Shown here: positions 11,901 to 60,200 of the stretch, piece by piece
Position numbering within the stretch: the stretch's first letter is position 1
How the letters are laid out: each line of letters opens with the position of its first letter
Notes under the pieces: generated by a model
Told to the model about the DNA's origin: nothing
The model's database searches: none
The model's input: the letters and a program-made list of their open reading frames with translations, nothing else
NCBI RefSeq assembly: GCF_022045235.1
Contig: NW_027266275.1
Coordinates: forward strand, 80,042,001 to 80,106,000
Reading direction: 5' to 3'
Source of the DNA: Haliotis cracherodii
Taxonomy: Eukaryota
Length of the DNA: 64,000 nucleotides
Translations under genes and position numbers: made by a program

Positions 11901-14900
11901 TTGCTAAGTTTTAAGCTGGGACATTGTAATATGATTTGATGTTTCTGATCGATCAATGCCGAACAAAACAGAGGAAGTCGTCGAGCGATACCCAAACATT
12001 ACCTAAATAGACACAATGAATTTTCCTCTCTGCGCCAACTCTAATTCTGAAGAAAGCTGTTAGGTCTTATGTGTAGAAGAACAGAATGACGCTGAAATAA
12101 GACGTTAATGGAACCATGACTGTGGAACTAAGCAGCGCTTTGAATATACGCTCCATGTCTACCTTTATGACTCATTTTACATTCTAGCATTAGTTTCAGT
12201 TGACTTTGTTCATATCCATTGATAAGATTGACGTACGAATCATCTTCTCCACATTTGGGGGGACGGGTGGCCCAGTCGTCTGAGGCGCAGCGATTCGCTG
12301 TGCAGAGTTGCATCCTTTGGGCATGCCAGAAACCTATGAATGTGGGTTCGAATCCCGGTTCGCCCCGATTAAGTTTCTAGGTTTGTCAGCACCATAACCG
12401 TGCTCGTGGGTTTCACCGAAGTGGTAAACGTCTGAGACTTGCATCACTTCGGGCTTTCCTCCCACATCAGGCTGACACGCCGTGATATAACTGGAATAAT
12501 GTTTAAAGCGCCGTTAAATCCCACTCACTCACTCACTCTTATAACAATTACACTATTCATCAACTCTGGTACTATCTAATCGATGGGTGTGTGTTACCGT
12601 TCTTTCATGTCCTTGTCTCAGATGATGACTCACGAGTGATCCTTGAAGAAGACGGAGAGAATACATCCGATTATATAAATGCCAACTACATTTCAGTACG
12701 TGTTTCACTATATTTAGTAAATATGATTATTGATAACATACCGTACTTGTATGAACGAGCGCAACCTTAAAACATATAATAATTTTGATATGCTAAGATA
12801 TAGAGTAAAGAAACATTTTTACAGACAATTGTTTCTGTTTACTTCTTTCAAAAGGGGTTTTCCAGTGGACATGGGTATATCGCAACGCAAGGTAATTATT
12901 TGTTTCTTCTTGGTCTAAACGAGTGAGAAAACTTTGTTTGTTGTTTGTAAGTTTGTTGTTTAGCACAGCATTCAGCAATAGCCAAGCTATATGACGGCAG
13001 TCTGTAAATAATCGAGAATGGACCAAATAATCCAGTGATTGATGTCATGAGGATCGATCCACACAATTGGAATACTATGACATGCATCAACCAAGTCAGC
13101 AAGCCTGACCACCCGGCTCCGTTAGTCGCCTCTTACGACAAGCATAGTCGCTGTCAAACTCAAACATGGGTCGCTGAAGATCTATTCTAACCAGGATCTT
13201 TACGGATGAGAAAGCTTTTGAATCAAATGTATTACATAGGTTCAACGTCTTTTTATGAAGACGATCTTACAGATGAATGTTCCACAAGGTGGTCTACATG
13301 CATGATGTTGTTGCATACTGATATAATACTGAGATTAAAATCCATAAATACAGTTTTTTGAAAAGTTCAATTGCACTTTTACAACTTGGTTTTATCATTC
13401 ATGTTTTCAAATGTAAATAATAGTTTCCATACGTCTATAATATCTGTAGGCCCCACACAAGCGACAGTTGGAGACTTCTGGAGAATGGTTTGGCAGCAGC
13501 GGGTGGGGAAAATAGTCATGGTGACACAGCTGAAGGAGATGCAGAAGGTAGGTAAACCTTACATGTTTGTTTATTAATGTAACACGCGAAGGAGCTATGG
13601 ACCTCCTTCAAAATACATACATAAAATGATATGATCATGTCATTGTTTCCTTTATTATTTATTGTGAATTGTAGGTTGTTGCATTGTTTGCCGAACTAAC
13701 TTTGCAAGTTCCACATTGAAGTTTGTTATTTAAGCGTCGTTTTTAATTGATGAACTGGTGGTTATCGTTCAAATTGCTGCAGGTGAAGTGTGAGATATAT
13801 TGGCCTTGCGATCATGACACCAGCAACTGTGGGAATATTTCTATAGAACATGAATGCACCGTAACACGAGCTGACTTTACCACGAGGACGCTGAAAGTAA
13901 AACATGTCACGGTAGGTCAGTTGTAATGTATATTTATTATCCTCAAAGTCCCAAAGTATGTTATGTAATTTCATGCACTGTTAGTACTTTAAAGGATACT
14001 ATGTATTCATCATTGTTGATCGCTAGATGACTTGCCCTATGTCTTCTAAAAGCTTCACCTTCGTGATCAAACAATGATATAGCTGGGGCCTAACGATAAT
14101 CATATACACAGCAGCTTCCCGGGTGCCCATATTGTATGTATTCAGTCGTCGGTTGCATATTAGGCCCGAAATGAAGATCCTATTATATATACATAGTTAC
14201 TTATTCGATACACTTACATGTGAACACGCTGGATGTTAGGTTCCTATTAACGATAATACATTGCTGTCATATGTTCACATGCAAGTGTTCGATTCCCCAC
14301 ATGGGCACTATGTGTGAAGCCCATTTCTGATGTCCCCCGCCGTGGTATTGCTGGAATATTGCTAAAACCATCCTCTCACTCACTTACTCACTCACTCACC
14401 CTCTCACTCACTCACTCACTCACACCCTCACACGCTCACTCACTCACTCACTCACTGATATGCTAGTGCTCTCACTTGTACATACATGTCTTTCTACATT
14501 CGCTGTAAGGAGACGTTGAACTAGACCTGTCAGTCTTTTGAGCTCCCATTAAGACAACAGTCATATAAAATAATAAATCGAGGATTTACTAACGGTTCCT
14601 CGTATTCTTTTATTCACTCTATTCTTATTCGTTATATCATTGTTGTACGGAAATGGTTGCAATGTCGAGCAATGAAACGATTCCAACAAACAGGCTCCAG
14701 AGACGAGAAGGGTCCTCCACTTCCAGTTCCTGACCTGGCCAGACCACGATGTCCCATCTGCTCCAGCTCTGGTCAGCTTCTGGAAGAGGATCAAACAGCT
14801 GGACGGTGGTGAGGAGGGGCCGTTGCTGGTCCACTGCAGGTGAGAAGTGATCATGAAGTAGTGATGGAGAGAAGGTGGTGAGAGATCAGATGGGGTGGCA

Positions 14901-17900
14901 ATGGGTGACGTAAAATAAAAAGAGCTAAACGTGTTTCCTGACAAAGAGAGGTGGACGTGTTTCATGATGCATGAAACTGTCCCCTGAAATGTAAGGTGCT
15001 TAAATACAATCAGTGATAGTAACATGATACTGGTCAATGAAGGAGTGGTGGAGAGAAGGTGGTGAGAGATCAGATTGGGTGGCGATGGGTGAGGTTAGAG
15101 GTACTTGAAACTAGTAATGTCCCCTGAAATGTAAGGTGCTCACATACAATCAGTGATATTGACATGATACTGGTCACTGAAGGAGTGATGGAGGTACTAG
15201 AGTGAGAGGATGGTGGGTGGGGATCGACGGAAAACACGGTATGTCCTCTGAAACAAAAGATACCTGAACTAATGGCAATCAGTAACGGTGACCATGAGAT
15301 ACTTGGCATGTTCTAATGTCAGCGCTGGAGTGGGGCGGACGGGGACGTTCATTGCTCTGGACTATCTGATGGACCAGGCTGAGGCAGAGCACAGGGTGAA
15401 CGTGTTCCAGTGTGTGTCAAGGATGAGACAGGCCAGGATGAACATGGTCCAGACCGTGGTGAGTTCATTCCTATCTTAGTAAATGCAACAAGCATCACGT
15501 TATGATTGGCAGACTATAAATATATAGAAACACGCATAGTTTATTGCCTGACTGAAACGTGCTTCTGTATCTAATATATACTAATATATATATTAGTATA
15601 AACTCTCGCTTTTTCGTACGCTTTTCGGACCGAGGAATGTACAGTGGTAGTGATTGGTCTATTCCAGGTATACGCCGTGTGATCACAACAAGGATACATA
15701 GCTATAGAATAAGGATATGATATGGGTATGGGTATGATATGAATATGATATGGATATCGCTATGATATTGATATGGATATGGGTATAGATATAGATATAG
15801 ACATAGATATATGGATATGGATATACAAATATATATGATATGGCTATGGGTATAGAATGCCTTAACCGCAAGGCTAATCGACCGCCGTCATGATTATAAT
15901 TGGTTGGTTTGTTGTTTAACGCCACACTCAGCAATATTCCAGCTATATGACGGCGGTCTGTAAATAATCGAGTCTGGACCAGACAATCCACACCATTGAT
16001 CATGAGCATCGATCCATGCAATTGGGATCTATGACATGCATGAACCAAGCCTGCGAGCCTGACCACGCGATCCCGTTAGTCGCCTTTTACAACAAGCATT
16101 GGTTGCTGAAGACCAATTCTACCCTGGATCTACCCTGGATCTTCATGATTATGATATGGATATGGATATGGATATGGATATGGATGTATATGGATAGATA
16201 TGATATAATATGATATGATATGATATGATATGGATCCTTCTGTTTCTCCATCACCAGCATCAGTACGAGTTCCTCCACCTGGTGGTGCTGGAGGCTGTCA
16301 ACAACAGAGGCACGTGCTACACCATTGCAGAGTTTCAGCAGATGTTTGAGTGTCTAAACAACAGAAATATAAACTCAAAGCTGAAGAAGGAATTCAAGGT
16401 TTGCAATAACAAATTCGTGACATTCGTTAAGGCTCAGGTCATAGTGGCCTGGAAAGGCACGAGTTATATAATTTAAGAATCACATTGTCAACATAAATAC
16501 GTCTCTATGTTAAACTACGCTGACACATTAACCCCATACACAATCACACAGACTAACATCTAGTCTCTGAAATGAACATATCGTACAGAAAAAAACAGTT
16601 GTTAAATTATCTTAATAAAAAAATAATAAATACACGTGTATGTCTGCATTCTGATGACCCGAGGTGTCCAAAGTAAACACATAGGTTCTACCTGGAGTTT
16701 CAATAAGTACATTGTATATTATTGTCATATAGAAAACAACGACAATCATCACATTGTACCCGCCCTGATAGAGGTGCAATATAGGCTTACTGAGGCGTGA
16801 CTAGTATGTGACTAGTACCTGTGAAGATCCGGGGTAGAATAGGTCTTCAGCAACCCATGCTTGTCGTAAAAGGCGACTATATGCTTGCCGTAAGAGGCGA
16901 CTAACGGGATCGGGTGATCAGACTCGCTGACTTGGTTCATGCATGTCATCGCATCCCAATTGCGTGGATCGATGCTCATGATGTCAATCACTGGATTGTC
17001 TGGCCCAGGCTCGATTATTTACAGACCGCCGTCATATAGCTGGAATATTACTGAGTGCGGCGTTAAACAACAAACAAACAAAACTTGTATGTGCTGAGTT
17101 ATGTTTTTCTAGATGTTCCATACTCAAAGACCACATTTGGAGAAGAAAGACGTGTCCGATGCTCTTCTTCCTGAAAACGTTTCAAGGAATAAGACCATCC
17201 TTCCAGGTATGAGATGTCACGTAAGAGGATGTCCTTCTGCCTATATTAGTATCAGCATCTGATGCAACTTACGACTGTGCTGTTTGTAACGTCAAATAAA
17301 ATATGTATTTATCGCAGCTAACAAGTCTCGACCGTATTTGTCAACACCTGTTGAAGGCTACAACAATTACATCAACGCTGTACTTCTACCGGTATGTCGA
17401 CCTCACTTATTTGTGTTTTACACTCATCATTCAAATGACCAATAACCATCGTCGTAGTTCACATCACATAGGAACGCTGCTTTACTGACTCACAAAGAAA
17501 TAATACTCATGTTCCAACTTTCAACGATTTCTAATGTGAAGTTTCAACATATCATCCAGTTTCCTCAAAATATATATTTCCTCCACCGCCAGTCCGTGAT
17601 GAGGTCCTCCATGCTGATCGCTACTCAGACGCCCATGGAGAACACCGTGGTGGACTTCTGGAGACTGGTGCACGATCACGACTGCTTCACCATTGTGTGT
17701 CTGGATGATTCACAGGTAACGTGAACACCCTACACTTCTTTGCGGTTGTGGGGAAGACCCGGGTTCGATTCCCGACATGGGTACAATATGTGAAGTCCAT
17801 ATCGGGTGTCCCCCTCCGTGATATTGCTGGAATATTGCTAAAAGCGGCTTTAAACCATACTCGCTCACTCTTTGCAGTTGTTCTCTTGTTTCACGTCACT

Positions 17901-20900
17901 GAATATATCATATTCATGGTGTAAAGGATATTGTTATGGATACGATGAACCGATCCGATAAACTTGGTGTCACGAAGTATTACATACGAACATTAGGTCA
18001 TCTAACAGCAACTACTTTCAATAAGCTCCATACATGGATGCGACGCCGACTTGCTTAATACCCTATTGCCTAATGTTGCGAATACGTTTCGATAGGGGGT
18101 GTCCTATGTGTGAAGCGGGGGTTGGCCAGTCCACTGTTTATGTAAACAAACACGGCTGTCTACTGAAAAACCATCTGCGATACTGTCAGAATTGTGGAGT
18201 TGGTAAAATCACTGTAGTGATAGAGTGAAAGAGTTTGCGAAAAGGGGAGAGAATCCTTTGTAGGACGAACATAATATGGAGATGGTATCCAACTAGCAAA
18301 CATACTGACACGAGTTGATAGAGGTGCCAAAGCTTCCTGGCAGGTTTCGGGTCAAGATGTTCATGACATTATCAACACACATCTACAATATTTTATCATT
18401 TGAAATATATCTTGACCCTCAAATTAAAAACAGAAATATTCAGGATATTCCAGTAGACGAACTTCCTCCTATCCTGTCAAAATATTTTATCAGCGTTACT
18501 AAAAGAGATGTTATTGACTATGACCCTTCCACTCTGAGATCTTACATTTCAAGCAAAGGTCGACATCTTAACTAAACTTGGCTATGAATTTGTCAAGGTT
18601 TGAGGGGTATTGAAATCTAGACAAATACAGGTAAAAACAGGGTAAAGGCAACTTAAAGAGTCGAAGTGAACCTGCATCTAACAAGAAAATAGCTATCCTC
18701 TGGGACAACAAAGAACTTGGAATTCGAAAAACCTCGATCATGAATTCAACGCAGTACCCTTTGATCTCCGTGGTTGTGATAAACACAGAAAGATATTCCC
18801 CAGGAACCGATTCAAACGAGGTCAAATACCAGTACTTAAGTTGCAAGAACGTACAGGTGATACTCCAGGCGATGTGAGGAATGTAATGCCCAAATAGTTG
18901 GCCAGTATGGAATATCCTAACAAGTGTCCAGCTACCATATAAAACACTGTACTAGTCCTGACCTCCCTCTGATGGTATGCATAGATGATCCCTTTCACGT
19001 GGCCACAAACACTTGACAAGTCAATTCAGTCCATTGATAAAGCCACATGGTTCCGTCGTCAACCCATCAGTGAGAACAAACTCAAATCACTCATGAAAGT
19101 AATGTGCGCTGCTTCGACCATACAGTCATCGAGGAAGTTATTTAAATTTATTGATGAGTCTCGACAATGTAGAAGTTTGTCTTATCACACCAGAAAATTC
19201 AAAGTAACAGTTATGTCTCGCTTAAGGCTAGCATGAAACAGGCTTTGAAATCTTTACAAATATGATATTTACTATACGGAAACACACGAAGTTAATCATC
19301 TTTTAACTAATAGTATCTATTTATGACTTAGCTTATAGTATTTATAGTAGGCGTGTCAAGCAAGCCCTCATTGGCTGACACAGTCGAGAAACGTGTCAAT
19401 ATAATGTATGACGTGACATGAATCACTTTCGACATTACAAGCTAAATATGTCTCATAGTTTCCGGTATATAATTATATATTAAGAGAGCATTCTACTAAC
19501 TACGATGCATTGGGGATTGTCTGTTCAGAGTGAATTCATTCTGTGAGTTCCGAGTCTTGGCGTGGAACCTTCAACATTAAGTCATGAGGGATAGATGATA
19601 CGTAATTCCGAGTTGCGAGTACGTTTTGTTAATGTATGCCGTTGTCCCGGTATAAACTCTGCCCCGTACAAATTCTCCTCCCGGAGATTTTATACCGGTA
19701 CAGATTCTCCCCCGGAGAATCTGTTCTGAAATAAAATCTCCCCCGGGCGGATATGTTTCGCGCCCCCCTCAGTATAAAGTCTCCCCCCTGATTATTCGGT
19801 TTATTGCAATGTCTTTAAGTACTATATTCTTTAAATAGTTATCTTTAATGTAGGGAGGGTTACTTTAAAAATAGATTATGAAATATGGTCATAATGAATT
19901 GATATTTTGCCCACCCGATTGACTGATATTACAACATTCACATGGTTTAGAACGGTACAATGAATGGTAAAGCATGCAAATAACACTAATACGCGATAGT
20001 GTATAAGAAAATATCATATCTCCGTTAAAACATAAAAACAATATTTATGAGTCTACATATTGATATAAGACTTTATCACTGTATCCAATTCCAAAATTTT
20101 AGATATAAACTTTCGGACAGTTCAGTTCAAAATTCTTCAACCTTTAATACATCACAGGATTTGTAGCTAGACGACGGGAATCTACAGTCTTGACTGTGTG
20201 TTTTCTTTGATGAGAATGTTTCTCACCGACCTTAGCGTGTAGGGATGTGATGTCCTGGGCAGGAAATGACAGTGTTTTGACATTAATTAACGTGTTGGAC
20301 ATCCCTAATTAACCTTTACTAATTCATGTTAAACCAACACAGGATGTTTTCTGGAAGTGGACAATCGCGAATGCCATAGAGCTGACACGACATGTGTTAA
20401 TAACTGTCCTAGAACTTCTAAAGTTACTAAACAATCTTTATACCTAACGACTAGCATATAAACTAAACATCGTCTCTATCAGAAGCCAGCTAAACAACCA
20501 AACAATCAAATTTCAAAAACAAACCAAATTCTTAGGACTTATTTTCGATAAACATCTCACCTGGGATGCTCACATTCAAAACATAACAACTAAATGCAGT
20601 AAAGACCTAAACGCGCTAAGATGCCTAACTTGCTCTAACTGGGGAGTTTGAATACTATTCCTGTTGTTTTTTCTGAGTTTTAATGCTTTTAGTGCGGATC
20701 ATCCGCGAATTTTGATGTGTTTAGTTTAGGGGATAGGCCATCGAATAGATCGTTTATCATTATATTGAAGAGGGTGGGGCTGAGGATACTGCCCTGGGGA
20801 GTGCCATTTTCTAGGGGACATTGGTCCGATAGTGTTTGGTCTATACTCACGGTTATTTTACGATTGTTTAGGAAGTCCTGGATGTAGTTTATTATCTGAC

Positions 20901-23900
20901 CTTTGAGTCCTATTTTTTAAAGTTTTTGTATTAGCCCGTCGTGCCATACCATGTCGAAAGCTTTAGAGAAGTCTAAGAAGATGCCTGTGGTATATTGTTT
21001 ATTTAGTTGTCCTCTCTTAATATCTTGCTCTAGTCGGGCGAGGTTATCTAGGGTTGAGCGGCCAGGAGTGAAACCGCTTTGATCTGGGTTTAGTGCCTCA
21101 AATACAATCACACTGCCTCCCAATGCACATACCCTAAAACTAAATGTAAAAAAAATGCGCACAAACAGACTGCCCAGGCACATGCACACCCTGGTGCATC
21201 CACTGCAAATCCATCCAACACACTTCACTTTCAAATCAATGCCCACACAGACACACACTCACCGAGCAGGCCAACAAACACATTAACATAGACACGGCCA
21301 AAATCCAAACACGAAAATTTGCTACACCCGCATCCAAACCACTCCTCCCTACACCACACCCAAACACCATCCCACAAACAAACACCACACCCATAACCGA
21401 CAGCTCTGTCTGGGGCCCCTACCGAGAAACTGCACCCACCTCACACACACAAGCAGCCACTCAACCAACCACGAACCCTCCGACATCTCAACATAGCCAA
21501 AACATCAACCCCCGCATGCAAAACAAACCACAACACGACCCTCATCCAAGCACCCTACAGCCCACATGGTAACAACACTCCCCCACAAGCAAGCACAACA
21601 ACAAAACACAAACACTAAGAAATCCACAGCTACACCCATCCCGCAAACACCTACACAACCCTCGACATCACATGCCTCCCCTATGGAAACTCAAACAGCT
21701 AAACCTAATCTAACCGATGACGAAGATTCGAAAAAATCCTCACCTTACTCCTAGTATACATGCATAGTCAAAACTCACCAATAGCTATCATGAAATCCTT
21801 CCACAAAGTAGCTTTCAATCTAAAACTAACCCATCTTCCCTTCTTCCTCTTTAACCTCCATCTAAAAGAAGTCACCGAATAAAATAAAAACTAAAAACTA
21901 AATCACCAATCACCCGAACCCAATAATGGAAGGACTAAATATTTTTCAGTGGAACGCCAACGGACTCACCTCCCACGGCCATGAACTAAAAACTAAATTT
22001 AAACTAAATAAAGGCCCTCACATTGCTTGTATCCAGGAAACCAAATTCTCAAAAAAATCCAAATTCACACTATCTAACTACAACTCAGTTAGAACTGACA
22101 GAGCTAAACCAAAAACAAGAAGAGCCGCAGGAGGACTAATCAGATATAAAGATATAAATTACGAAGAAATAAAAATAGACACGCCAAACCTAGAAGCCAA
22201 CGGCAATAAAATCACATTATATAACCGAAAAATAAACATCATAAATATATACCACTGGGCGGAACAAAAAGTCCAACCTGAGGATCTAAACAAACTACTC
22301 AAAATAAGCGATAGATCTACTATATTCCTAGGAGACTTTAACGCTCACCATCCTACATGGAGCATAGATGATAAAATAGATAATCATCGCAAATTAATTT
22401 CCGAATGGATAGAAACAAACGACCTAGTACTCCTAAATAACAACCAACCCACGAGGTACGATAAGATAAACCAAAAAATGTCGGCTATCGACCTAACCAT
22501 ATGCACCGCAGATCTAGCTCAAAGTACTCAATGGGAAGTGCACGACGTCCCTCTAGGTAGTGACCACTTCCCCATAAACATAACCATAGGAAATACAAAC
22601 GTACCAATCCAAACAGAAAACCAAGAACCAAAATTCCATTACAATAAAGCTAACTGGGACCAATTCGAAGATATCTGCGTAAATCAGCCTTCAATAAAGC
22701 AACACGCGACTACAAACATCTAAACATAGCCCACGAACTAAACCACCTGGTTAAAAAACTAGTCCAAAATAGCCAAAAGTAGAGACTGGAAAAAATTCTG
22801 CGAAGGTATGAATAACCGTACTGATGCCAGAACGGTCTGGCGCAAAATCCACGCCATTAGAGGCTTAAAACGACATAAAAAAACTAATATTAACAACTCA
22901 ACCAACCCCGCCCAAAAAGCAAATAATCTCGCCAACCACTTTTCAGCCGTTAGCAGTAACACCAACTTCAGCCAAAAATTCCAAGATAAACTTAAAACAA
23001 AAAACAAACCCACAAAAGAACCAAACAATAACAATCTAGAAATAAACCAACCCTTCACAATGGAGGAGCTCCTCTACGTAATCCAAAACAGGAAAAAGGG
23101 CACAGCCCCAGGATTTGACCTAACTTCTTACCAAATAATTAAAAATCTCCCGCTAAAACTACTCCAGGCACTACTCAAACTATACAATCTCATCTACCTA
23201 AACGGACAGGTTCCTACTCCCCGGAAACAGGCCCTAGTCATAACAATCCCTAAACCCAATAAACCAGCTAATCAAGCTAACTTATATAGACCAATATCCC
23301 TAACTTCAAACTTATGCAAAGTAATGGAATCAATGGCTAAAAATAGATTACAACATTACCTAACCCAAAATAACATCAACTATTGAACTGCATGGCAAGT
23401 ATTTATAAAACGACCGGGGGAGGAAATATTCTGGGGGGAGATTTTATTTCGTAGGGTGGGGGAGAGTTTATTTCGAGAGGGGCGGAACTGTACCGGTATA
23501 AATTCGCCGGGGGGAGATTTTATTCTGGGGGCGAATATATTTCGTGACGCCGTCATCTTCAAACAATCTTCAAGTTGTTCATACGAAGTTACGTTGCTAT
23601 GGGACAATGGAATCCATGTGAAATAATTAGAACGAAAAAGCAAATCAGTATCAAACAAAAACTATTAAGCTCAGTGGGCAGTACTGAAATAAAATCGCCT
23701 TATGTGGTGGTGACATGGGCGTATTAGCTGTGTCGTGTCTGGGGTCAGTGATGATTATGTATGTCGACAAACACGTATAACATATTATCATATAATGGGT
23801 AGGTTTCTCGGCAGGATAAAGCCAACGGATAAAAACGATATCCGTTGGGGTCATATGCGGATAAAGATGCAAATATCAAAGGTCAAGTAGGGACTACTTT

Positions 23901-24859
23901 CACTGTTTATAAACAAACATGGCGTCGCCCTCGTCATCTGGCGATCGAGTCAGAATTAACCATCGGGGATCTGGATAAGCTACAGGGATGATTGTTATTA
24001 TCAAAAGAACAGTCTAATATACTGAAAATCAGTGTCTAACTGTGACGTAGCTAAGGCATTTTATAAGTTTTGGCAACTTTGGAGATATAAATTTCGAAAC
24101 AATTTTGCGAGGGCACGAGGCCTAGCCAAGCGGGATCAGTAGCCATATCTGTGCTTGTAGACCTCTGCGGCTTGAAACCTTCTCTACAAATTAAAATAGT
24201 TGGATTTTGAACCAAATATGTTTGAATTGTTACCTTGTTTCGTTTTGTCGCTGTGTGTACATCTGACTACACTTCTTAACGTTATGACAGACCGACTGTC
24301 AACAACGTCTGACCGTGGCCGTGACGTCTCATAGACTAGGGTTAGAGTGGCTTCCCTTTGACAAAGGGCAGTTACTCTAGCGGACAGACCGATGGATTGC
24401 CGCGAAAGGAAAATATAAACCATTGTTGTTTTGCGTATATGTTGCTTCGCCACTGTATAAGAAACGGATTTCAGTTGGAACTATATTGGCTACTGTCACT
24501 GTCCGACTGACCCATCACTTACCCTATGACGTAATATATATTAATGCGCGCATTCCAGGAAAACTCGCTATGTTTCGGTAATGTTTGTGAGAGAGGGAAA
24601 GCGATTTTGAAGCACAGAATTAAAGAATGACATTATATGATAAAGAGGTTATCACGCTTGTGTGTTTGGGGATGGTAAATAACCTGTATTAGGAATAAAC
24701 ACTATGTATTTAGCTCGCCAAGGCTCGCTAAATACAATGTTTATTCCTAATGCAGGATATTTACCATCCCCAAACACACTCGCGTGATAACCTCTATGTG
24801 TGCCGTTGTATATTGTTGACAGTAAATAGGGGCGTTTATCTTTCATACCAATACCAATA

Positions 24860-24944
<85 letters not shown>

Positions 24945-27228: not shown

Positions 27229-27469
27229 CCCAGTGTTCGACGTGGTATAATATAACATGACATCATGCAGAAGATCCGTGTTACATGTGGGATGATCTTC
27301 CGTTTCATCATAATTACAGAAGTCACTTTAAAGACTCTATGCTGCAAAATGTACATTACAATAATACAGTGCAGTTATATACTAGGAATACTATTTAAAG
27401 GACCCCTGTCATTTCTGTATAATAATACAGAATATAGAATAAGATGAACAGATTCAGTCCTGCTTCAGA

Positions 27470-27910: not shown

Positions 27911-28214
27911 TTGACTATGAAGATTGAATTCCATGACGTCATTTATTTACATATCATTTTTTGAATATATTGTTCCAAGCGTATATTTGTGGTCTGACCT
28001 CTATAACCTGAAACACTTTGCACATGTCAGGAACACCTATACCGCCAGGCATCCTACATGTGACATCCATCAAAGTCAACGTCAGAGCATGTGACCCTAT
28101 TACATCGTATTGTGAGTGACTGAGCTTTGTGTCGCATACGTGCATTATCCAAGCCGTATCCCGGCACGTACCTTTTGTCACATCAACACGTTTCTTACAG
28201 GGCTTTGGCGCTAT

Positions 28215-39196: not shown

Positions 39197-39250
<54 letters not shown>
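39167..39250. repeat. Compound (CAG)n(CAA)n microsatellite
   Basis: Direct reading. Confidence 0.97.
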
Positions 39251-48200: not shown

Positions 48201-51200
48201 TTCACTATAAGCAGGAGTCTGCAATATTTCCAGGACCAAGAATACATCCTTTTCCAGGCCGTCCAGTGAAACAAATCTACTTCACTACATTAATAATGAA
48301 ATGCAGTTTCCGCAACTTTTCTCAAAATACTTCATTCACAGCTTGTAATGGCACATATGGTAAGAACTGTACGGAGAAATGTGGACACTGTAACGGAACT
48401 AGCTGCAACCACGTCGACGGCACCTGCCCAAACGGCTGTCTGTCGGGTTGGAATGGAACGACGTGTCATGTTCAGACTGAGCGTGAAGGTTAGAAGCATT
48501 ATACTGTAATTGTATTATATATCATTGTAGAGTCGACGTTCTTAAACAATTACCCTCTTCACAGCATGAAGTGGTTGTATTAGAAGCATTATTCTTCATC
48601 TTTACATAAAACACATATGTTCCATAGTCATGTTGCAGGAGCCGTGACAGTCGTAGATCTAAGATCGCTTTGTGAAACGAGGTCCATCTGTTTTATTCAG
48701 GTTTGGATGACAATGGCGGAACATCTATTTTTGGGATGACCAATCTCGTGGTTGGTGTGGCATTGACTGTAGTAATCATCGTTGCTGTTGCTGTTGCTGT
48801 GATATTGCTGAAAAGGTATGTTAGAAAGAAACCTTCAGCAAATAAGGATAACCACTGGCATATGCACAGAGTTCAAAGAAGCCTCCTTCTCCAAAAGACA
48901 TGGGCATGAAACGTATATTGCGAATCATGCAGGTATCTCCCTTGTATTACAGGAGACAACTGAGATCTGACAGTCACACAACCCCATGTGTTCCAGGTCG
49001 AGTGTTTAGTAAGTGGTTTTACATATCCGTACGTTGTAGTGATAAATCTTCTTCTATACCTGAACAATTGTGTTATACATTGTTGTTGAACTCAGGGGTT
49101 GCATTTTCTAATTAACCGGATGCAGCTGTAACCTGTCGTGTGGAGCCTACGAGCAACAGGACATTGATACCATGCAGGTAACTGGTCCACAACTAAGTTC
49201 GATAATCACCCAGAAACTACTGCTAAATGTATTAACGAAGTGTGCCTCTTTCAGATGTTGAGGATGAGGACGAGGCGTTCTCGGTGGAGGTAGAAGTTGA
49301 CTTTACTGAAGATGACGATGCAACCTACTGCAACTGGGTCTCCCCCTATGTCGTGCTGGAGAAACTGGCTCAGTACATAAAAAGGAAACAAGAGGACGAT
49401 ACGTCCTTTGAAAATGAATACAAGGTAACTAATAATTACGTTATACTATCCCGTTGTTGTGCTAAATTGGTTTGTATTCAACGATAACGTGATAACTATT
49501 AATTCTGATTTTATGAAAACTAAATAACGCAACCTCTTTATTAATTTACATATTATGGAATCTAATGGAGTCCATAAGTTGTACTTAACCCGCTCCAATG
49601 CGATGTAACGGTATGTATATCATTAATCTAATGAACCTCCAGATGCTTCCGTACGGGATCAGAGGCCACGTTGAAGAAGGAAAAAAGCCTGAAAACAAAC
49701 CGAAAAATAGATTTGCTGCTTTGTACCCATGTAAGTGTTTAAGTTGAACTCAAATGTGAATATATTTTAAAAAATATTTCATTTGCACAAAAAAACATAA
49801 CAAACACGAATATCGTCTTGAAGCACAGGGTGGAATTATTTTTTCTTTGCAATTTCTGATTTTTCACAAAGACTAAAAGGTGTTAACTTTTCACATCTCA
49901 CAATCTCAGACGATGAGTCGCGAGTGATTCTTGAGAGCAGTGGAAATGCTACATCAGGCTATATCAACGCTAACTACATGCAGGTTTGTGCTTTCGTATC
50001 AGATCCTTGCATAGTAAAACACAGGTCTAAGGATTTTATTTAATTCATATAGCTGTTTATATAGCTGTCATTTTTCACAATTCGTTTCGGACAGAAAAAA
50101 ATAAATATCCATTGTACTTTTTTCGAAATTCAATAATCCCAAATTGAATAGAGAGGAATTCAAAATAAGTCTACATTGGTGTTGTCAGAAACATTATTGT
50201 AATACATGTCTGTGTCATGTTTAGTATGCTACATTTTGCGTTTTCTCGTTTGTTGAAGGGCTTCCCTGATGGTTCTAAATACATCGCCACACAAGGTATT
50301 TCTTCTGTCTGTTTCAGTGTGTGTCGTATGTATAATGCTTGAAAACACCAAACTTGCACATCTTGGTGATAATATTGGCGTTATTGGCCAAGAAAAGTTC
50401 TGTATTTCAATCGACTAATGGAGAAATGCCAATAATTCACACTTTTTGGTGATGCTCTGAGAGAAAATACACCACGCGTTCATTTACACATTGGTAGTTC
50501 CTCTTTCATTACGTCCACGTAATTATAAACAGGTCCTACGCCAGCGACAGTGGGAGACTTCTGGAGAATGGTTTGGCAGCAGCGGGTGGGGAAAATAGTC
50601 ATGGTGACACAGCTGAAGGAGATGCAGAAGGTACATGAAGTTCAAGCTGTAGAATTTGTTTTTGTTTTGTTTTTGCTTAAATATATACTAGGACAAGGTA
50701 AAACATATCCAAGCTATATCCTTTAAGTAAACATATGTTTTAAAGTCGAGCTTTCATTGTGGACATGATGTGTCATACAATCGGCTCATCCTCATTTATC
50801 CATAAAGTGGGGGCGGTCGGGTAGCCTAGTGATTAAAGCGTTCGATAGTCACGCCGAAGACCCGGGTTCGATTCCCGACATGGGTACAATGTGTGAAGCA
50901 TATTACTGGTGTCCCCCGCCGTAATATTTTTGGAATTTCCTAAAAGCAGCGTAAAACCATACTCACTCACTGACTTATCCATCATAAACTACTTACAAGA
51001 GAAATGTCTTGGACGGCCACAGCTCTGTTACTGCATACTGAAGGAATACATGGGCGAATATGGGACCATTTTTCTCATCCCTGTGCTTCGACTCTTCAAT
51101 GTTGAATGTACGTACAACTGGCTGCGGGTTATTTCGATGGTTGACAGGTAAAGTGCGAGCGGTACTGGCCTGACAAGGACAAAAGCAAACACTGCGGCGA

Positions 51201-54200
51201 CCTCACCATAGGACTTGAAAGCACGGTGACAAGGACTGACTACACGATCAGGAAACTGACCGTGAAGAATGCCAAGGTATTAAGTTTTCCAATAAGGTAA
51301 AGTCAGGTCAGGTAAGGTAAGGTAGGCGTTATCGCAATTTTGTGATGACTTTATCATGTAACGTATTGTGCCATTAAGTCTTGTTATGCGCTTGACTTAT
51401 TATTAATCGTGTCGTCCTTATATCAACTGATTGTCCTATGTCTAGATTAAGAATAACATGCTTAATAGAAATACCATTATCTGTACAGAAAAGCATAAAT
51501 AAGACTAATTCCTCGTGTCTTTCCCGTCTCTTCATGTTGAATTGTGATTATGTTTTTATACAGGGACTCTGAAAATTAATTCAATAGGCATCAATGTTTT
51601 TCTAACTGACATAATTCTAATAACCAGGGGTCAGAGACGAGAAGGGTCATCCACTTCCAGTTCCTGACCTGGCCAGACCACGATGTCCCATCTGCTCCAG
51701 CTCTGGTCAGCTTCTGGAAGAGGATCAAACAGCTGGACGGTGGAGAGGACCGGCCGTTGCTGGTCCACTGCAGGTGAGAAGTGAACATGAAGGTGGGTTG
51801 GGGTGTGGGGGGTGGGGGGTGGAGAGAAGGTGGTGAGAGATCAGATGGAGTGGTGACGGATGGAAGGAGTGATGGAGAGAAGGTGGTGATAGATCAGATG
51901 GGGTGGCGATGGGTGGAAGGGGCGGTGGAGAGAAGGTGGTGAGAGATCAGATGGGGTTCGCGATGGGTGGAAGGGGCGGTGGAGAGAAGGTGGTGAGAGA
52001 TCAGATGGGGTGGCGATGGGTGGAAGGGGCGGTGGAGAGAAGGTGGTGAGAGATCAGATGGGGTTCGCGATGGGTGGAAGGGGCGGTGGAGAGAAGGTGG
52101 TGAGAGATCAGATGGGGTTCGCGATGGGTGGAAGGGGCGGTGGAGAGAAGGTGGTGAGAGATCAGATGGGGTGGAAGGGGCGGTGGAGAGAAGGTGGTGA
52201 GAGATCAGATGGGGTGGCGATGGGTGGAAGGGGCGGTGGAGAGAAGGTGGTGAGAGATCAGATGGGGTTCGCGATGGGTGGAAGGGGCGGTGGAGAGAAG
52301 GTGGTGAGAGATCAGATGGGGTTCGCGATGGGTGGAAGGGGCGGTGGAGAGAAGGTGGTGAGAGATCAGATGGGGTGGCGATGGGTGGAAGGGGCAGTGG
52401 AGAGAAGGTGGTGAGAGATCAGATGGGGTGGCGATGGGTGGAAGGGGCGGTGGAGAGAAGGTGGTGAGAGATCAGATGGGGTTCGCAATGGGTGGAAGGG
52501 GCGGTGGAGAGAAGGTGGTGAGAGATCAGATGGGGTTCGCGATGGGTGGAAGGGGCGGTGGAGAGAAGGTGGTGAGAGATCAGATGGGGTTCGCGATGGG
52601 TGGAAGGGGCGGTGGAGAGAAGGTGGTGAGAGATCAGATGGGGTTTGCGATGGGTGGAAGGGGCGGTGGAGAGAAGGTGGTGAGAGATCAGATGGGGTTC
52701 GCGATGGGTGGAAGGGGCGGTGGAGAGAAGGTGGTGAGAGATCAGATGGGGTTCGCGATGGGTGGAAGGGGCGGTGGAGAGAAGGTGGTGTGAGATCAGA
52801 TGGGGTTTGCGATGGGTGGAAGGGGCGGTGGAGAGAAGGTGGTGAGAGATCAGATGGGGTGGCGATGGGTGGAAGGGGCGGTGGAGAGAAGGTGGTGAGA
52901 GATCAGATGGGGTGGCGATGGGTGGAAGGGGCGGTGGAGAGAAGGTGGTGAGAGATCAGATGGGGTTCGCGATGGGTGGAAGGGGCGGTGGAGAGAAGGT
53001 GGTGAGAGATCAGATGGGGTTCGCGATGGGTGGAAGGGGCGGTGGAGAGAAGGTGGTGAGAGATCAGATGGGGTGGAAGGGGCGGTGGAGAGAAGGTGGT
53101 GAGAGATCAGATGGGGTGGCGATGGGTGGAAGGGGCAGTGGAGAGAAGGTGGTGAGAGATCAGATGGGGTTCGCGATGGGTGGAAGGGGCGGTGGAGAGA
53201 AGGTGGTGAGAGATCAGATGGGGTGGCGATGGATGGAAGGGGCAGTGGAGAGAAGGTGGTGAGAGATCAGATGGGGTGGCGATGGGTGGAAGGGGCGGTG
53301 GAGAGAAGGTGGTAAGAGATCAGATGGGGTTCGCGATGGGTGGAAGGGGCGGTGGAGAGAAGGTGGTGAGAGATCAGATGGGGTGGCGATGGGTGGAAGG
53401 GGCAGTGGAGAGAAGGTGGTGAGAGATCAGATGGGGTGGCGATGGGTGGAAGGAGTGATGGAGAGAAGGTGGTGAGAGATCAGATGGGGTGGCGATGGGT
53501 GGAAGGGGCGGTAGAGAGAAGGTGGTGAGAGATCAGATGGGGTTCGCGATGGGTGGAAGGAGTGGAGGAGAGAAGGTGGTGAGAGATCAGATGGGGTTCG
53601 CGATGGGTGGAAGGGGCGGTGGAGAGAAGGTGGTGAGAGATCAGATGGGGTTCGCGATGGGTGGAAGGAGTGGTGGAGAGAAGGTGGTGAGAGATCAGAT
53701 GGGGTTCGGGATGGGTGGAAGGGGCGGTGGAGAGAAGGTGGTGAGAGATCGGATGAGGTGGCGATGGGTGGAAGCGGCAGTGGAGAGAAGGTGGTGAGAG
53801 ATCAGATGGGGTTCGCGATGGGTGGAAGGGGCGGTGGAGAGAAGGTGGTGAGAGATCGGATGGGTTGGCGATGGGTGGAAGGGGCAGTGGAGAGAAGGTG
53901 GTGAGAGATCAGATGGGTTGGCGATGGGTGGAAGGGGCAGTGGAGAGAAGGTGGTGAGAGATCAGATGGGGTTCGCGATGGGTGGAAGGGGCGGTGGAGA
54001 GAAGGTGGTGAGAGATCAGATCGGGTGGCGATGGGTGGAAGGGGCAGTGGAGAGAAGGTGGTTAGAGATCAGCTGGGGTGGCGATGGGTGGAAGGAGTGG
54101 AGGAGAGAAGGCGGTGAGAGATGAGATGGGGTGGCGATGGATGGAAGGGGCAGTGGAGAGAAGGTGGTTAGAGATCAGATGGGGTGGCGATGGGTGGAAG

Positions 54201-57200
54201 GGGCGGTGGAGAGAAGGTGGTGAGAGATCAGATGGGGTGGCGATGGGTGGAAGGGGCGGTGGAGAGAAGGTGGTGAGAGATCAGATGGGGTGGCGATGGG
54301 TGGAAGGGGAAGTGGAGAGAAGGTGGTGAGAGATCAGATGGGGTAGCGATGGGTGGAAGGAGAGGAGGAGCGAAGTTGGTGAGAGATCAGATGGGTTGGC
54401 GATGGGTGGAAGTGATGGAGATTAGGTTGTGAGAGACCAGGGCCCACTTGCACAAAGCGATCTTAGCGCTACAACAAACGTAAGCCCATGTTAAAGTATG
54501 GGAGTTACGATCATCTTAGCGCTAAGATCGTCTTGTGCAAGTGGGCCCAGATGGGGTGGCGATAGGTGGAAGGGGCGATGTAGAAGGTGGTGAGAGATCA
54601 GATTGCGTGGCGATGGGTGTGGTTAGAGGTGCTTGAAACTAGTAATGTCCCCTGAAATGTAAGGTGCTTAAATACAATAAGTGATATTGACATTATACTG
54701 GTCAATGAAGGAGTGGTGGAGGTACTAGAGCGAGAGGATGGTGGGTGGTGATCGACGGAAAACACGGTATGTCCTCTGAAATATAAGATACCTGAACTAA
54801 CTGCAATCAGTAACGGTGACCATGAGATACTTGGCATGTTCTAATGTCAGCGCTGGAGTGGGGCGGACGGGGACGTTCATTGCTCTGGACTATCTGATGG
54901 ACCAGGCTGAGGCAGAGCACAGGGTGAACGTGTTCCAGTGTGTGTCAAGGATGAGACAGGCCAGGATGAACATGGTCCAGACCGTGGTGAGTATGCACAC
55001 ATAAACAGTGACAACTACTAACTCTGCCCAGCACAGTCAAACCACACAGAAAATAGTTTGTAACAGTTTCGTATTGGTACATGTACTCTATGGCAAAACC
55101 GGACAACCTTCATAAGATTATGTTGGTCACTACAGGCTTGCTCGCTTCTTTTATGCATGTATTTCAGAATCAATTCGAGTTCGTCCATCTGGCGGTTCTG
55201 GAAGCCCTTGAGAGTAGAGGCACATTCTACAAAATGACTGATTTTGACCGCATTTTCGGAAGTGAGAAAAGTTACAGCAAACAGCAAGACACAAGCTTGA
55301 AGAAGGAATTTAAGGTAGGGTCGTTTCGCAGATAACAAAATTAAAATAAGATCACAATCACAAAAGATTAAAATGATAAAACATATTAAAAGATTGAAGT
55401 TAAAACTTTACAGTTCATTACTCCTAAACGGATCCTCCTTTCTAGCTGAGATTTCAAAAAGAAAAACATCAGCTCGTTCCTTTTATGTATGTTTGTCCTT
55501 TTAGTCAATTCAATTACAAAGACCACAACAGACGGAAAAAGCCATTTCTGATGCGATGCTTCCAGAAAATGTGTCCAAAAACAAGAACAAGGCCATTCTT
55601 CCAGGTATCTAGTTTACATGACGTTTTCTTTGTCGATATAAAACAAAGGTTCCATGATTTGCCGCAAAATGGTAAAGCGCGCGTGACCTTGTGACTGCCT
55701 TTTATCTACCCCCATGATGAAGCCCCCTTTATCAATTATATTTAAATAATTCAATGTAATTGATTTCAGGGAACAAGTCACGGCCTTATTTATCCACCCC
55801 AGTTGAAGGCTACAACAATTACATCAATGCTGTCACTCTACCAGTATGTTAAACATTCATTTTCTTTAATTTGCTATAGATTCACTGCCTACGTCTATAT
55901 GATGTTTGTTGTTTAACGCCGCACTCCGCAATATTCCAGCTGTATGACGGCGGTCTGTAAATAATTGAGTCTGGACCAGACAATCCAGTGATTGAAATCA
56001 TGAACATTGATCTGCAAATTGGGATACGATGGCCAACCAAGTCAGCGAGTCTGACCACCCGATTCCATCAGTCACCTCCTACGACCAGCATGGGTTGTTG
56101 AATACTAACTCGGGTTTTCAAGGGGAAAGTCTATATGATCAAACAAGAGATGTTGATGAGAATAATCAGATGGTATAATTAACCTCTAAACTACAATCCG
56201 AAACATCTGACTAGTTTTGCAGGGAGATGAAAAACAAGATTTCCAACTTTTCTATATGCGTCTAATCTTTGAGGTAGCTTTATTAACTTCAGCTGTCTGA
56301 AATAACCGTACTCATATGTTCTGGTGATTGGCCAATGAGATATTGACATAAATATTTGTAAATATTTCCTTTACCGACTCACAAAGAAATAATACTCATA
56401 TTCCAACTTTCAACGATATTTTATGTGGATTTTCAAAATATCATCCAGTTTCCTCAAAATATATATTTCCTCCACCGCCAGTCCGTGATGAGGTCCTCCA
56501 TGCTGATCGCTACTCAGACGCCCATGGAGAACACCGTGGTGGACTTCTGGAGACTGGTGAACGATCACGACTGCTTCACCATTGTGTGTCTGGATGATTC
56601 CCAGGTGACATGACCAATGTACCCTCATAGCCTCCCTACACACTACGCTACGCTCTATTGAATAGACATTGTTTTAAGTCAAAGAAGTAATGTAAGATGA
56701 GTATTACAATCTTTGTTTAATTTGTATAGTTATGTGATAAATACAGTCCCGGGAAGAAGAGGTACTCAAAGGGCCGTCGTAAGAAGTCACCAGGGTGGTT
56801 ACAATTTGTAACCTGGTAAATTGTTGACATCGGACTCCAATGGCGGTGAGGCTGCGGATTTTGCCTGACCCAGGTTCGATTATTTACAGTCCGCTGTGAT
56901 ATGGCTGGAATATTGTTGAATATGACACTCACTCAATTGCGAATACGATCCGTGAAGATCCGGTGTAGAATAGGTCTTCAAAACCCATTCTTGCTTTAAA
57001 AGACGACTATGCTTGTCGTAAGAGGCGACTAACGGGATCGGGTGGTCAGGCTCGCTGACTTGGTTGATGTATGTCATCGTATCCCAATTGCGTGGATCGA
57101 TGCCCATGTTGTCAGTCACTGGATTGTCTGGTCTAGACTCGATTATTTAAAGACCGCCGCCATATAGTTGTTATATTGCGGCGTTAAACAACAAACAAAC

Positions 57201-60200
57201 AAACAAACAAACAAACAAACTAACAAACGAAGAAACAACGACAACGACACAATGACAGTGACTCACGTGGAATATAGCAACTGATCGGTCTTTAGAATGA
57301 CAATGTTCTGAATTAAAGAGGCCATGATAAATCCAACATAATCTTTCCTTCAGGATGTTGAGCGCCTATACCCTGGCAGCAAGGGGGTCCTCCAAGCAGG
57401 TCCATTCCACATTCAGCATGCCCAAGAAAGAAGTATGGGAAGTTTAACAGAGAAGACCCTGATGCTGACCAATACTAAACAGGTTGGTGGGATGGGGTAG
57501 TCCTTGAGCTTTATCTCGTCACGCCAAAGATCCGGTTTCATGTCCTCCAATGAGTAAACTGTATGAGGTGAATGTTGGGTGTCCACTCTGGCGATATAGC
57601 TGGAATGTTGCTGAAGGTGTTTACTAATTAACTCAGGTGAGATGAGGACAACATTTTGGTTAAGACAAACCGATTGCTCGGACAATTTGCCAAACTGTTC
57701 CAATTATTTTCAAATTTTCATCTTATTTAGAGGTCTGACTATTGCGTTTTTAAAGGAAATTCGGCAGAATGAACAAGGCTGCTGGACGAAGTGACGACAA
57801 TTACTGTAACAAAGATTTATCCCGAGACAACAATGCTATTTCACAAATGTTATATTTGGGATAGGACTTTCTTTGTTAAGTACAGATAGTCGTACTTTTG
57901 GGGGTTGAGTTCCGTTCGGAATTCGAACCCACACTGCCTGAGTGAGTCACCTAATCGCCAGCAGTGGGGGGTCGAATCCCGCAAGGGACTCAACCCCAAA
58001 GGTACGAGAATCTGTACTTTACAAAGAAATTGTTATCCAAAATATAACATTTGTTACATTTGACCACTTTCTAAATGGTATTGTGTGTTCAATGCTATTT
58101 CAGTTCAGCGGTTTTCAAACACGTACGTCGCGAAGTTTCTACTTGCATTGAAATTATACCGATACCGCTTTCGTACGGTCAAATATGTTTGTATGTTTCT
58201 ATGTGTATTCTAACTATTGACTGTAATATATTTCAGCGACGAACTCCTCAGTCTGTCAGTGTCCTGAGTCTTAACTCTCTGCTTGTCTCAATGTCGCGCG
58301 ACACTGCTGGGTTGCTAGAGCTGGTCAACAGAGTGGATACGACACTCAGTCAAGATCAGCACAAAGTTCTCGTCCACTGTGTGTGAGTATCTGATGTTCG
58401 ATATGTTCCTGTAAGGGGATACAGAGAGATATACAAGTGCTGCTTCAGCACCCTCTCGCCACTGAGTCCTCGGTTACACGCGCACACGGAGTGTGGATAC
58501 AGGAGCCGCTGGCACAGTGAACGACGTGTTTGGGAAGACACAAAAGCATCCTGTGCAAAAGCTGAGAGTATCCTACACTTGAATTCTACTCTCACACGTG
58601 ATGATGGTTTCAACATTCGCCCGAAACTCACATCCGATACCGTCGTTACGTCGTTACCTCCCTAGGCTCTGTTACATAAAGCGTATACTTGAACATAGAC
58701 GTACGATTGTCGTTTACTTCCATATCGACCCCTTAAGATCCGGGGTAGAATAGGTCTTCGGCAACCCATGCTTGTCGTAAAAGGCGACTATGCTTGTCGT
58801 AATAGGCGACTAATGTTATCGGAAGGTCAGACTCGCTGACTTGGTTGATGCATGTCATCTTGTCACTATTGTGTGGATCGATCCTCATGATGTCAATCAC
58901 TGGATTGTCTGGTCCATACTCAATTATTACAGACCGCCGTCATATAGCTGGAATATTGCCGAGTGCGGCGTTAAACAACAAACAAACGAACAATATAGAC
59001 GTGCGGCGGTTGTTTCTCTTAGACTTGACCTCAGAACTTTCAACCGTCGTTATTTACCAGACACAACTAGTATGCCAGAACATAGACTGTCACAACCTGC
59101 ATACATAGATGGTGAGGATGTTATTGAACATGATGTTGATTGATGTTTCAGTGACGGTGCCCGGATGTGTGGGGTGTTCTGCGGTGTCCTGAACACCATC
59201 AGCAGATTGAGGCTGGACTCTGTGGTGGACATCTATCTGACCAACAGGGAGCTTCAGTTGGCCAGGCCACAGTTTATACAGGCATTCGTAAGTACAACTT
59301 GAATTGGGAATTTTCGGTATGCCCGTCCATAATGTAACTACAAAACGTCAACGCCAAAGATTAACCAGTCTCGATTATCCGCCGATAACAGATTCCATTG
59401 GACGTCAAAAACGCAAAATCGCGGTGAAAATAATATGGATGGATCACTGAGAATAAGTGATGACGCCAGGTGTTCGCGAAAATGGTGAAATGAACCTCGG
59501 GACGGTATCTTCCGCCACCACACACAATACAAGAAACATGAACGTTTTCCTTCTAATATCATGAACATGACATAATAATAACGGTAACGTTGATATACAT
59601 GCGTACTTTCAGTTTTATAGAAAAAATACACAATAGTATACAGCAATGTTTGACAGTCCTTACAAAGAATATACGGATATATATATATATTCAGTGTACA
59701 TTATTCACATTAGGGGTAGATCTAATATAAACAAGTAGTTGAAACATTTTGTGTTTAATAATGGACACAGTTTAACCTCTGTTGAATGGCGTCGGAACTG
59801 AGTGAGTATAACTGAATGCGTTATATAATTTGAGGCGTAGAAGAAAAAGGATATGAGGATGGAGGAATAAATGAAATGCTAGAAGTAGGCCATGTGCCAC
59901 AGTGAGCTTTGCCACAGGCATCATCACAACCACGTGTACAGTACAACTGCCGTTGAATAGGAAGACCGTATGTCCGTTTTATCCGGGAAGGGCGATAGAC
60001 CAACCGAAACGTTATACGCATGCGTGTGGTGCAGGAAGAGACTCTGAAAGTGAGACCAAAGTCTCTGACGTCAATGGAGGTCGACGCATCTATCTACAGG
60101 AAGTGCTGTGATACGTGTAACGGTAGTACCTCTGCAGCAACGGCGAGCAACCAGTGTCGGTGTCGACATACTGGAAAATGATCAGCAAATAATGTTTGAC

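Follow-up and report, generated by a model that had tools for sequence, protein, structure and literature searches.

How can two neighbouring genes that have drifted far apart over most of their length be almost identical, down to silent and intronic sites, in a few short stretches? This question is raised by a 64-kb window of the Haliotis cracherodii genome (the window being the whole stretch of DNA analysed), in which two genes for lectin/EGF receptor tyrosine phosphatases, A and B, lie head to tail, both on the forward strand and with homologous exons 33-39 kb apart. Gene A matches the H. cracherodii RefSeq protein P0151 (XP_071106716.1) exactly and gene B matches P0154; RefSeq names both receptor-type tyrosine-protein phosphatase epsilon-like. 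A preliminary description of the window had proposed patchwork ectopic conversion of the phosphatase core between these paralogues. Four tracts of silent and intronic identity, with at least eight switch points in all, agree with that proposal, and interlocus gene conversion between A and B is very probably the best explanation for them.

Anatomy of the tracts

A 16-exon model of the cytoplasmic part (x1-x16) was built from reading frames and splice sites, and every modelled exon agrees with the RefSeq proteins residue for residue. Both genes are intact by comparison with the RefSeq models. When exons were searched individually, those of the ectodomain matched F5/8-type-C/lectin-like and EGF domains, while the cytoplasmic exons gave two rounds of matches to Pfam PF00102, located as expected along the profile, corresponding to a first (D1) and a second (D2) phosphatase domain. 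The matching exons are x6, x7, x8, x12 and x15, of which x6 and x15 fall slightly under the gathering score. D1 carries a WPD loop (WPDHD, x7) and a P-loop split between two exons (VHC/SAGVGRTG, x7/x8), both read directly. The D2 P-loop of both genes (25910-25915/26194-26220 in A and 58378-58382/59152-59178 in B) keeps its Cys, and the Arg of the C(X5)R motif is changed to Met. Judged from this motif, D2 is probably a pseudo-phosphatase.

Comparison of A (positions 1-36000) with B (36001-64000) by blastn, followed by base-by-base alignment, gave four colinear blocks of high identity (Table 1). All other colinear matches are exons at 70-85% identity, and the remaining matches between the two genes are interspersed repeats and a 53-bp minisatellite. 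In x5, the first 20 nt contain five mismatches and the following 78 nt none. Seven mismatches occur among the 146 nt of x7, three of them within its first 4 nt. Over the 411 nt that end just past x8, all 15 mismatches lie in the 269 intronic bases (15054-15322 in A), and the 136 nt of x8 itself are identical. The third tract has 13 mismatches in 248 nt, of which two lie in the 123 nt of x12 and eight in the 113 bp of intron before it. The fourth has five in 159 nt, all within x15, and the 17 bases past its donor site are the same in both genes. These counts bear out the near-identical segments listed in the preliminary description, including the 121 of 123 nt given for x12. "Almost identical" holds for the exons; the intronic parts are 93-94% identical.

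Table 1. Coordinates of the tracts, exons, repeats and other features of the window, with synonymous divergence (pS) between genes A and B for each cytoplasmic exon.
Feature	Gene A or window position	Gene B	Strand	A/B pS	Remark
Cytoplasmic part, x1-x16	11149-27228	49255-63475	+		RefSeq P0151 (A), P0154 (B)
blastn block 1	13448-13550	50531-50633			95%, final 80 nt identical
blastn block 2	14680-14898 and 15054-15464	51614-51853 and 54582-54992			second piece 96.4% over 411 nt
blastn block 3	17480-17727	56369-56616			94.8%
blastn block 4	26188-26346	59146-59304			96.9%
Tract T1	13470-13549	50553-50632	+		3' 78 nt of x5 plus GT; 100% identical
Tract T2	14699-15464		+		x7, whole intron 7, x8 and 6 nt past donor
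Tract T2, 5' part in B		51633-51862	+		x7 and donor flank, ending at first minisatellite units
Tract T2, 3' part in B		54582-54992	+		269 bp of intron 7, x8 and 6 nt past donor
Tract T3	17480-17727	56369-56616	+		113 bp of intron, x12 and 12 nt of flank
Tract T4	26188-26346	59146-59304	+		x15 flanked by identical intronic bases, 6 upstream and 17 downstream
x1				0.77	
x2				0.35	
x3				0.66	
x4				0.96	
x5 (DFWRMVW)	13450-13547	50533-50630	+	0.15	3' part in T1
x6	13783-13911	51148-51276	+	0.74	unconverted
x7 (WPD)	14694-14839	51628-51773	+	0.06	in T2
x8 (AGVGRTG P-loop)	15323-15458	54851-54986	+	0.00	in T2
x9	16258-16398	55168-55314	+	0.53	unconverted
x10	17113-17206	55505-55604	+	0.66	unconverted
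x11	17318-17391	55770-55843	+	0.56	unconverted
x12 (D2, DFWRLV)	17593-17715	56482-56604	+	0.04	in T3
x13	25014-25148	57354-57482	+	0.71	unconverted
x14	25773-25915	58237-58382	+	0.54	unconverted
x15 (D2, DGARMCG)	26194-26329	59152-59287	+	0.09	in T4
x16	27157-27228	63362-63475	+	0.36	unconverted; pS of shared part
Minisatellite, G-rich, 53-bp unit		51814-54412	+		49 copies, 93% match; intron 7 of B, inside T2
N run, 137 nt		43089-43225			5' end of B's first EGF exon; outside all tracts, 7 kb upstream of first B tract
N run, 131 nt		60982-61112			last intron of B (x15-x16); outside all tracts, after last tract
~260-bp repeat copies	12933-13207, 15900-16139, 16817-17082, 40069-40321, 44461-44865, 55903-56111, 56948-57215, 58735-58993				SINE-like
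~115-bp repeat copies	1210-1305, 14287-14402, 17753-17870, 42763-42882, 46817-46882, 50856-50975				
Transposase remnants	1704-2452 and 33391-34223				upstream of A; between A and B

The similarity ends abruptly. Within 60 nt beyond every tract edge, ungapped identity is 18-43%, a random level. The four tracts, at 95-100% identity, thus alternate with exons at 63-68% and with unalignable introns. All four 3' edges lie 2-17 nt past a donor site, and two of the 5' edges lie inside exons. The blocks over x7 and x8, listed as separate segments in the preliminary description, are both homogenised and are best read as the single tract T2, because homologous intron joins them on both sides of the minisatellite in B. 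That description also regarded the homogenisation as restricted to catalytic exons. The tracts do centre on exons, but copying also took in intron 7 in full and 113 bp of intron 11. "Catalytic" is apt for the D1 exons; x12 and x15 belong to D2, which lacks the catalytic Arg.

The minisatellite has only two copies of its unit in A, where they lie within an internal duplication of ~184 bp (14855-15250) at ~91% identity. Its expansion in B appears to postdate the conversion. Over 52-54 kb, the minisatellite region of B, GC skew reaches +0.79.

The same anatomy bears on the proposal that A and B exchanged sequence by unequal crossing-over, or through a complementary DNA (cDNA) template made from RNA, instead of by short-tract DNA conversion. 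Such an origin would account for 3' edges at exon ends and for the lack of intron sequence in T1, but it is already contradicted by the arrangement of the tracts and can be given almost no credence. A single unequal crossover gives one switch point, not eight or more. A cDNA template would have converted x5-x6-x7-x8-x9 together without introns; instead, x6 and x9 are untouched, and intron 7 and part of intron 11 were copied.

Divergence at silent and intronic sites

Synonymous divergence between A and B, computed exon by exon by the Nei-Gojobori method, was among the checks put forward with the original proposal, and it is far from uniform. Its distribution is bimodal: five of the 16 cytoplasmic exon pairs (x5, x7, x8, x12 and x15) have pS of 0-0.15 and the other eleven 0.35-0.96. 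The exons between the tracts, described earlier as heavily diverged, are indeed so at 62.8% (x6), 66.0% (x9), 66.7% (x13) and 68.1% (x14) nucleotide identity, with nonsynonymous divergence (dN) of 0.27-0.38. The intermediate values of x2 and of the shared part of x16 may reflect older, decayed conversion tracts. The last exons are also unequal in length: A stops after ...YDNM, and B continues for 14 codons to its stop.

That protein-level selection cannot produce this pattern, as the preliminary description argued, is supported at four-fold degenerate sites, where 6 of 90 differ in tract exons versus 53 of 93 elsewhere (Fisher P = 4e-14). Exon x11 serves as an internal control. Its protein sequence is 96% identical between A and B and its silent sites are nonetheless near saturation; protein constraint at this locus therefore does not yield DNA identity. 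The longest identical run spans 155 coding sites, compared with a maximum of 69 in 20,000 shuffles (permutation P < 5e-5). Identity extends into introns at 254 of 269 positions in intron 7, 105 of 113 upstream of x12 and 17 of 17 downstream of x15. Introns outside the tracts are unalignable between the two genes. In total, intronic sites within tracts differ at 29 of 445 positions (6.5%; 93.5% identity) and exonic sites at 14 of 621 (2.3%).

Intronic and four-fold sites taken together differ at 0/11, 19/337, 12/143 and 1/41 positions in T1 to T4. Divergence on this measure is not heterogeneous among the tracts (0-8%, chi-square P = 0.37), and the pooled value is 6.0% (K ~0.063). One copying episode therefore suffices, and no tract is demonstrably recent. 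The recurrence claimed in the preliminary description is thus not seen within the A/B pair, which shows one age class of ~6%; in three other paralogue groups the same exons are homogenised (see below).

Base composition also distinguishes the tract exons, whose G+C content at third codon positions (GC3) is 0.69-0.80 versus 0.35-0.60 in most other A/B exons. A footprint of GC-biased conversion is possible, but it was rejected as a demonstrated one: the same five exons are GC3-rich family-wide (0.44-0.85 in other members), and the in-tract differences between A and B have no weak/strong asymmetry (13 versus 17, unpolarised).

Perfect identity over T1 (80 bp) and over x8 with its donor (142 bp), together with two N runs in the window, could indicate that cross-talk between paralogues during assembly or consensus calling made these stretches alike. 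Several observations make such an artefact highly implausible. The H. cracherodii assembly xgHalCrac1 was built with hifiasm from PacBio HiFi reads of 15-20 kb at 37x, with a base quality value (QV) of 62.8, and the pipeline as listed has no short-read polishing step (PMC9709981). The tracts are islands of 80-770 bp in kilobases of unique sequence, such that a read spanning a tract also carries its unique flanks. They bear 43 copy-specific differences between A and B and hence are not collapsed, and the same pattern occurs at three other loci on two other scaffolds. Zero synonymous change in x8 is itself unremarkable, as 21 four-fold sites at ~6% divergence would show none with a probability of ~0.27. 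Placement of allelic haplotigs in tandem was likewise rejected, since exons with pS > 0.5 and unalignable introns are not allelic.

Both N runs lie outside the tracts. Comparison with A indicates that the first run takes away the acceptor of the first EGF exon in B and roughly 8-10 nt at the start of that exon. P0154 matches exactly at 42207-42299 (residues 1-31) and at 43227-43313 (residues 36-64). Only four residues are unaccounted for, and the annotated frame of B is therefore continuous through this run. The reported gap rate of the assembly is ~52 per Gb (PMC9709981), at which two gaps in 64 kb would be very unlikely; the runs are probably masked letters rather than true gaps.

Relatives within the family and in other abalones

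A genome search with the x8 tract returned high identity only in A and B. Some 20 other paralogues, on scaffolds C6, C56 and C1, match it in the exon only, at 70-81%. Paralogues were compared over 10 kb around 20 loci, with D1 and D2 exons coming from different paralogue subsets. Among them, A and B are each other's nearest relatives in every exon at the DNA level, and outside the tracts their nucleotide distance is ~0.31-0.37, versus 0.38-0.56 to other family members. Because they are mutually closest in every exon and still ~0.33 apart outside the tracts, A and B are old sister duplicates. The shallow divergence of the tracts against the deep divergence of the other exons implies that the tracts are far younger than the duplication. 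The tract exons of A and B are 20-35% diverged from every other member of the family, and there is therefore no family-wide pool of sequence.

All paralogue pairs with a saturated background (pooled non-core pS >= 0.5) were scanned for exons whose pS was <= 0.2, which revealed three further homogenised groups on two other scaffolds. In the first, two forward-strand copies on C56 (37.01 and 37.08 Mb) are paired with an inverted copy 0.4 Mb away (37.47 Mb, reverse strand). Here, identity is 95.5% in x5, 95.1% in x7 (over 205 bp, ~60 bp of them intronic) and 92.3% in x8, against a background of 70% in x6, 75% in x9 and 79% in x11. In the second, a copy at 18.60 Mb on C6 resembles a cluster at 20 Mb on the same scaffold in x7 (96%, pS 0.12-0.19) and to an intermediate degree in x8 (pS 0.38-0.45), while the other exons are at 68-80% identity with pS of 0.63-0.98 (x5 included, at 0.87-0.98). 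The third involves D2 exons on C56, one copy being 22 Mb away, with pS of 0.14-0.27 in x15 versus 0.50-0.62 in x14 and 0.36-0.67 in x16. All low-pS exons in saturated pairs fall in the set x5, x7, x8, x12 and x15. On sequence grounds, the homogenisation in these groups reads as separate, local pairwise events and not as one family-wide pool. The family-wide claim of the preliminary description thus survives in that the same exon set recurs in three other groups, but it fails for a shared sequence, given the distance of the A/B tract exons from all other members.

The C6 cluster at 20 Mb is itself uninformative because it consists of young whole-unit duplicates, 85-94% identical uniformly across introns and exons. 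One of its paralogues (C6:20567600-20577599, L022) has an in-frame stop in the WPD exon x7 (FWK*YRS) and may be a pseudogene.

The recurrence of one exon set also has a bearing on nucleotide-level constraint, in which splicing enhancers, codon bias, RNA structure or an intron-hosted RNA would slow the silent sites of the five exons and the adjacent intron. Low pS of the same five exons in four gene groups, their high GC3 (fairly high also in other family members) and a pS somewhat reduced between distant clades (0.52-0.66) are what such constraint would produce. It would, however, have to switch on and off: x5 has pS of 0.10-0.15 in two pairs and 0.87-0.98 in others, x12 has 0.04 in A/B versus 0.53-0.58 in C56 pairs, and x8 has 0.00 versus 0.38-0.56. 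That an exon is low in some pairs and saturated in others points to episodic copying and not to intrinsic constraint on silent sites. Moreover, the whole 483-bp intron 7 is shared and similarity is then lost abruptly, and in-tract intronic and four-fold sites both differ by ~6%, as expected of neutral sequence of one age. An Rfam scan of positions 13300-17900 for an intron-hosted RNA found no family, which also counts against this explanation. Constraint as the source of the tracts is very unlikely.

Proteins of other abalones date the duplication. Starting from x8, a HMMER search identified the H. rufescens orthologue of A (P0004), and word-index searches with P0004 and P0154 led to the H. 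asinina orthologue of B (P0155). A protein search found no B orthologue in H. rufescens or H. rubra and no A orthologue in H. asinina at E <= 1e-150. Outside the tracts, A groups with H. rufescens A and B with H. asinina B, and the duplication therefore predates those species splits. Within the tracts, H. cracherodii A differs from H. rufescens A at four residues, and at all four H. cracherodii B has the state of H. cracherodii A. Two of these changes, D at position 19 of x7 and R at position 20 of x15, are common to both H. cracherodii genes, and H. rufescens A and H. asinina B have G and K. This is the pattern expected from conversion after the cracherodii-rufescens split, which these two sites weakly suggest; the copying would then, as we infer, be younger than that speciation.

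Is the core kept uniform by a continuing process? Under selection-maintained concerted evolution, frequent conversion would be favoured because it keeps the phosphatase core uniform while the ectodomains diversify. Homogenisation of the same exon set in four gene groups fits such a process, as do the two derived residues common to A and B in H. cracherodii and the known analogue TLR1/TLR6 (PMC2077338). The intermediate pS of x2 and x16 (~0.36) and of x8 in the C6 group (~0.4) could likewise represent older, decaying tracts. However, all A/B tracts fit a single age of ~6% with none demonstrably younger, conversion of the most conserved exons is expected from dependence on homology alone, and x12 and x15 lie in a D2 without the catalytic Arg. 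It was also observed that this pseudo-phosphatase-like domain nonetheless holds two homogenised exons. Continuing, selected conversion is therefore a tentative alternative to a single homology-limited episode.

A wider form of the idea takes in the whole mollusc-specific lectin/EGF receptor-phosphatase family of abalone, whose dozens of copies sit on three or more scaffolds and include the inverted copies 0.4 Mb apart and copies 22 Mb apart. Its five phosphatase-core exons would make up a shared concerted module that short-tract conversion homogenises again and again, leaving the ectodomain and the exons between the motifs free to diversify. Family-wide operation of this kind is somewhat doubtful. 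If true, the module would be self-sustaining and homology-gated, similar to TLR1/TLR6 at the scale of exons, and possibly tied to the diversification of immune-type receptors.

A proposed homology-limited route and its precedents

Conversion between A and B is preferred because it is the only reading that fits, together, the silent and intronic identity, the eight or more switch points and the sister relationship of two distant genes. A plausible course of events begins with old tandem duplicates ~37 kb apart, whose introns and most of whose exons would have diverged past recognition. Non-reciprocal repair, once or a few times, would then have copied short stretches of one gene into the other, probably by double-strand-break repair through synthesis-dependent strand annealing, with the neighbouring paralogue as template. 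Homology enough to seed and resolve the repair would have remained in the most conserved exons alone, leaving the edges in or beside them, and intron 7 would have been carried along whole with the conserved x7 and x8 anchoring both ends. Limitation of homology to conserved exons would explain the 3' edges close to donor sites, the 5' edges inside exons and the single fully copied intron. Afterwards, neutral divergence would have reached ~6%, purifying selection would have held the exonic parts to 2.3%, and intron 7 of B would have gained its minisatellite. Such a process may be self-reinforcing, as converted exons stay pairable and the drifted x6, x9, x13 and x14 would have escaped.

Certain points weigh against conversion as the full account. 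The four 3' edges cluster within 2-17 nt of a donor more tightly than random ends would, and their explanation needs the argument from limited homology. The same exons have a somewhat reduced pS between distant clades as well (0.52-0.66 versus 0.7-1.0 for others), and synonymous constraint or compositional bias may add to the signal. Finally, the comparison of clustering by species comes down to two amino-acid sites. Directly observed are the mosaic, its reach into introns and silent positions, the one age class of the tracts and the recurrence on the same exons in other groups.

Short-tract, exon-scale conversion between tandem duplicates is familiar from human RHD/RHCE, the red/green opsin genes, CYP21A2/CYP21A1P and HBG1/HBG2. 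In these cases, hundreds of bases pass from one neighbouring duplicate to the other in patches and without reciprocity, and particular exons are often at the centre of the transfer. The human duplicates are young and above 90-95% identity overall. The abalone pair, in contrast, has a saturated background, in which only conserved exons can pair.

Among receptors, the closest parallel is the mammalian pair TLR1 and TLR6, tandem paralogues whose gene conversion is domain-limited (Kruithof et al. 2007, PMC2077338). As tandem receptor paralogues, they have been converted independently in several lineages on the conserved signalling side while the ligand-binding ectodomain diverges. They differ from A and B in that one continuous region of ~300 codons is involved, in an intron-poor gene followed in nine species (PMC2077338), whereas the abalone genes are intron-rich, with four short tracts split by unconverted exons and with evidence from one species and its paralogue groups rather than from orthologue DNA. 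The tandem HMA4 copies of Arabidopsis halleri show mosaic divergence by interlocus gene conversion, with a conversion rate that varies along the gene with exon/intron structure and leaves alike and diverged parts (bioRxiv 10.1101/2025.10.29.685298). The HMA4 copies are young, and divergence forms the islands in a mostly alike sequence, whereas A and B are old and it is identity that forms islands in a largely saturated background. An invertebrate example is provided by the GOT1 paralogues of the copepod Tigriopus californicus, where conversion homogenises some parts and islands of divergence persist, in another gene family and another genomic arrangement (PMC3728101).

A literature search found no report of such conversion for receptor phosphatases or abalone. 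The A/B tracts are well-supported but ordinary gene conversion between tandem duplicates, a process already well known, and no general principle is changed by them. What is most interesting about them is that the same five exons have been hit repeatedly, in several old paralogue pairs. The locus shows, cleanly and at the resolution of single exons, homology-gated conversion between very old duplicates, and the family would be a usable natural system for studying what sets tract boundaries. There are also practical consequences. If the conserved protein tyrosine phosphatase exons are used to build trees, to date duplications from synonymous divergence (dS) or to call orthology in this expanded family, the results will be wrong, because those exons record the last conversion and not the duplication. 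In the endangered black abalone, short-read variant calling in the same exons may confuse one paralogue with another.

Two families of repeats are scattered through the window. A SINE-like (short interspersed element) repeat of ~260 bp occurs in many introns of A and B in both orientations, at 75-90% identity, and explains most of the non-colinear blastn matches between the genes. The copies of a second family, of ~115 bp, are up to 99% identical. One of them begins 26 bp past the 3' edge of T3 in A, and the first N run has another directly against its left flank. Remnants of Tc1/mariner-like transposases, both diverged, occur twice in the window; they show DDE-type motifs and 44-73% protein identity in tblastx blocks.

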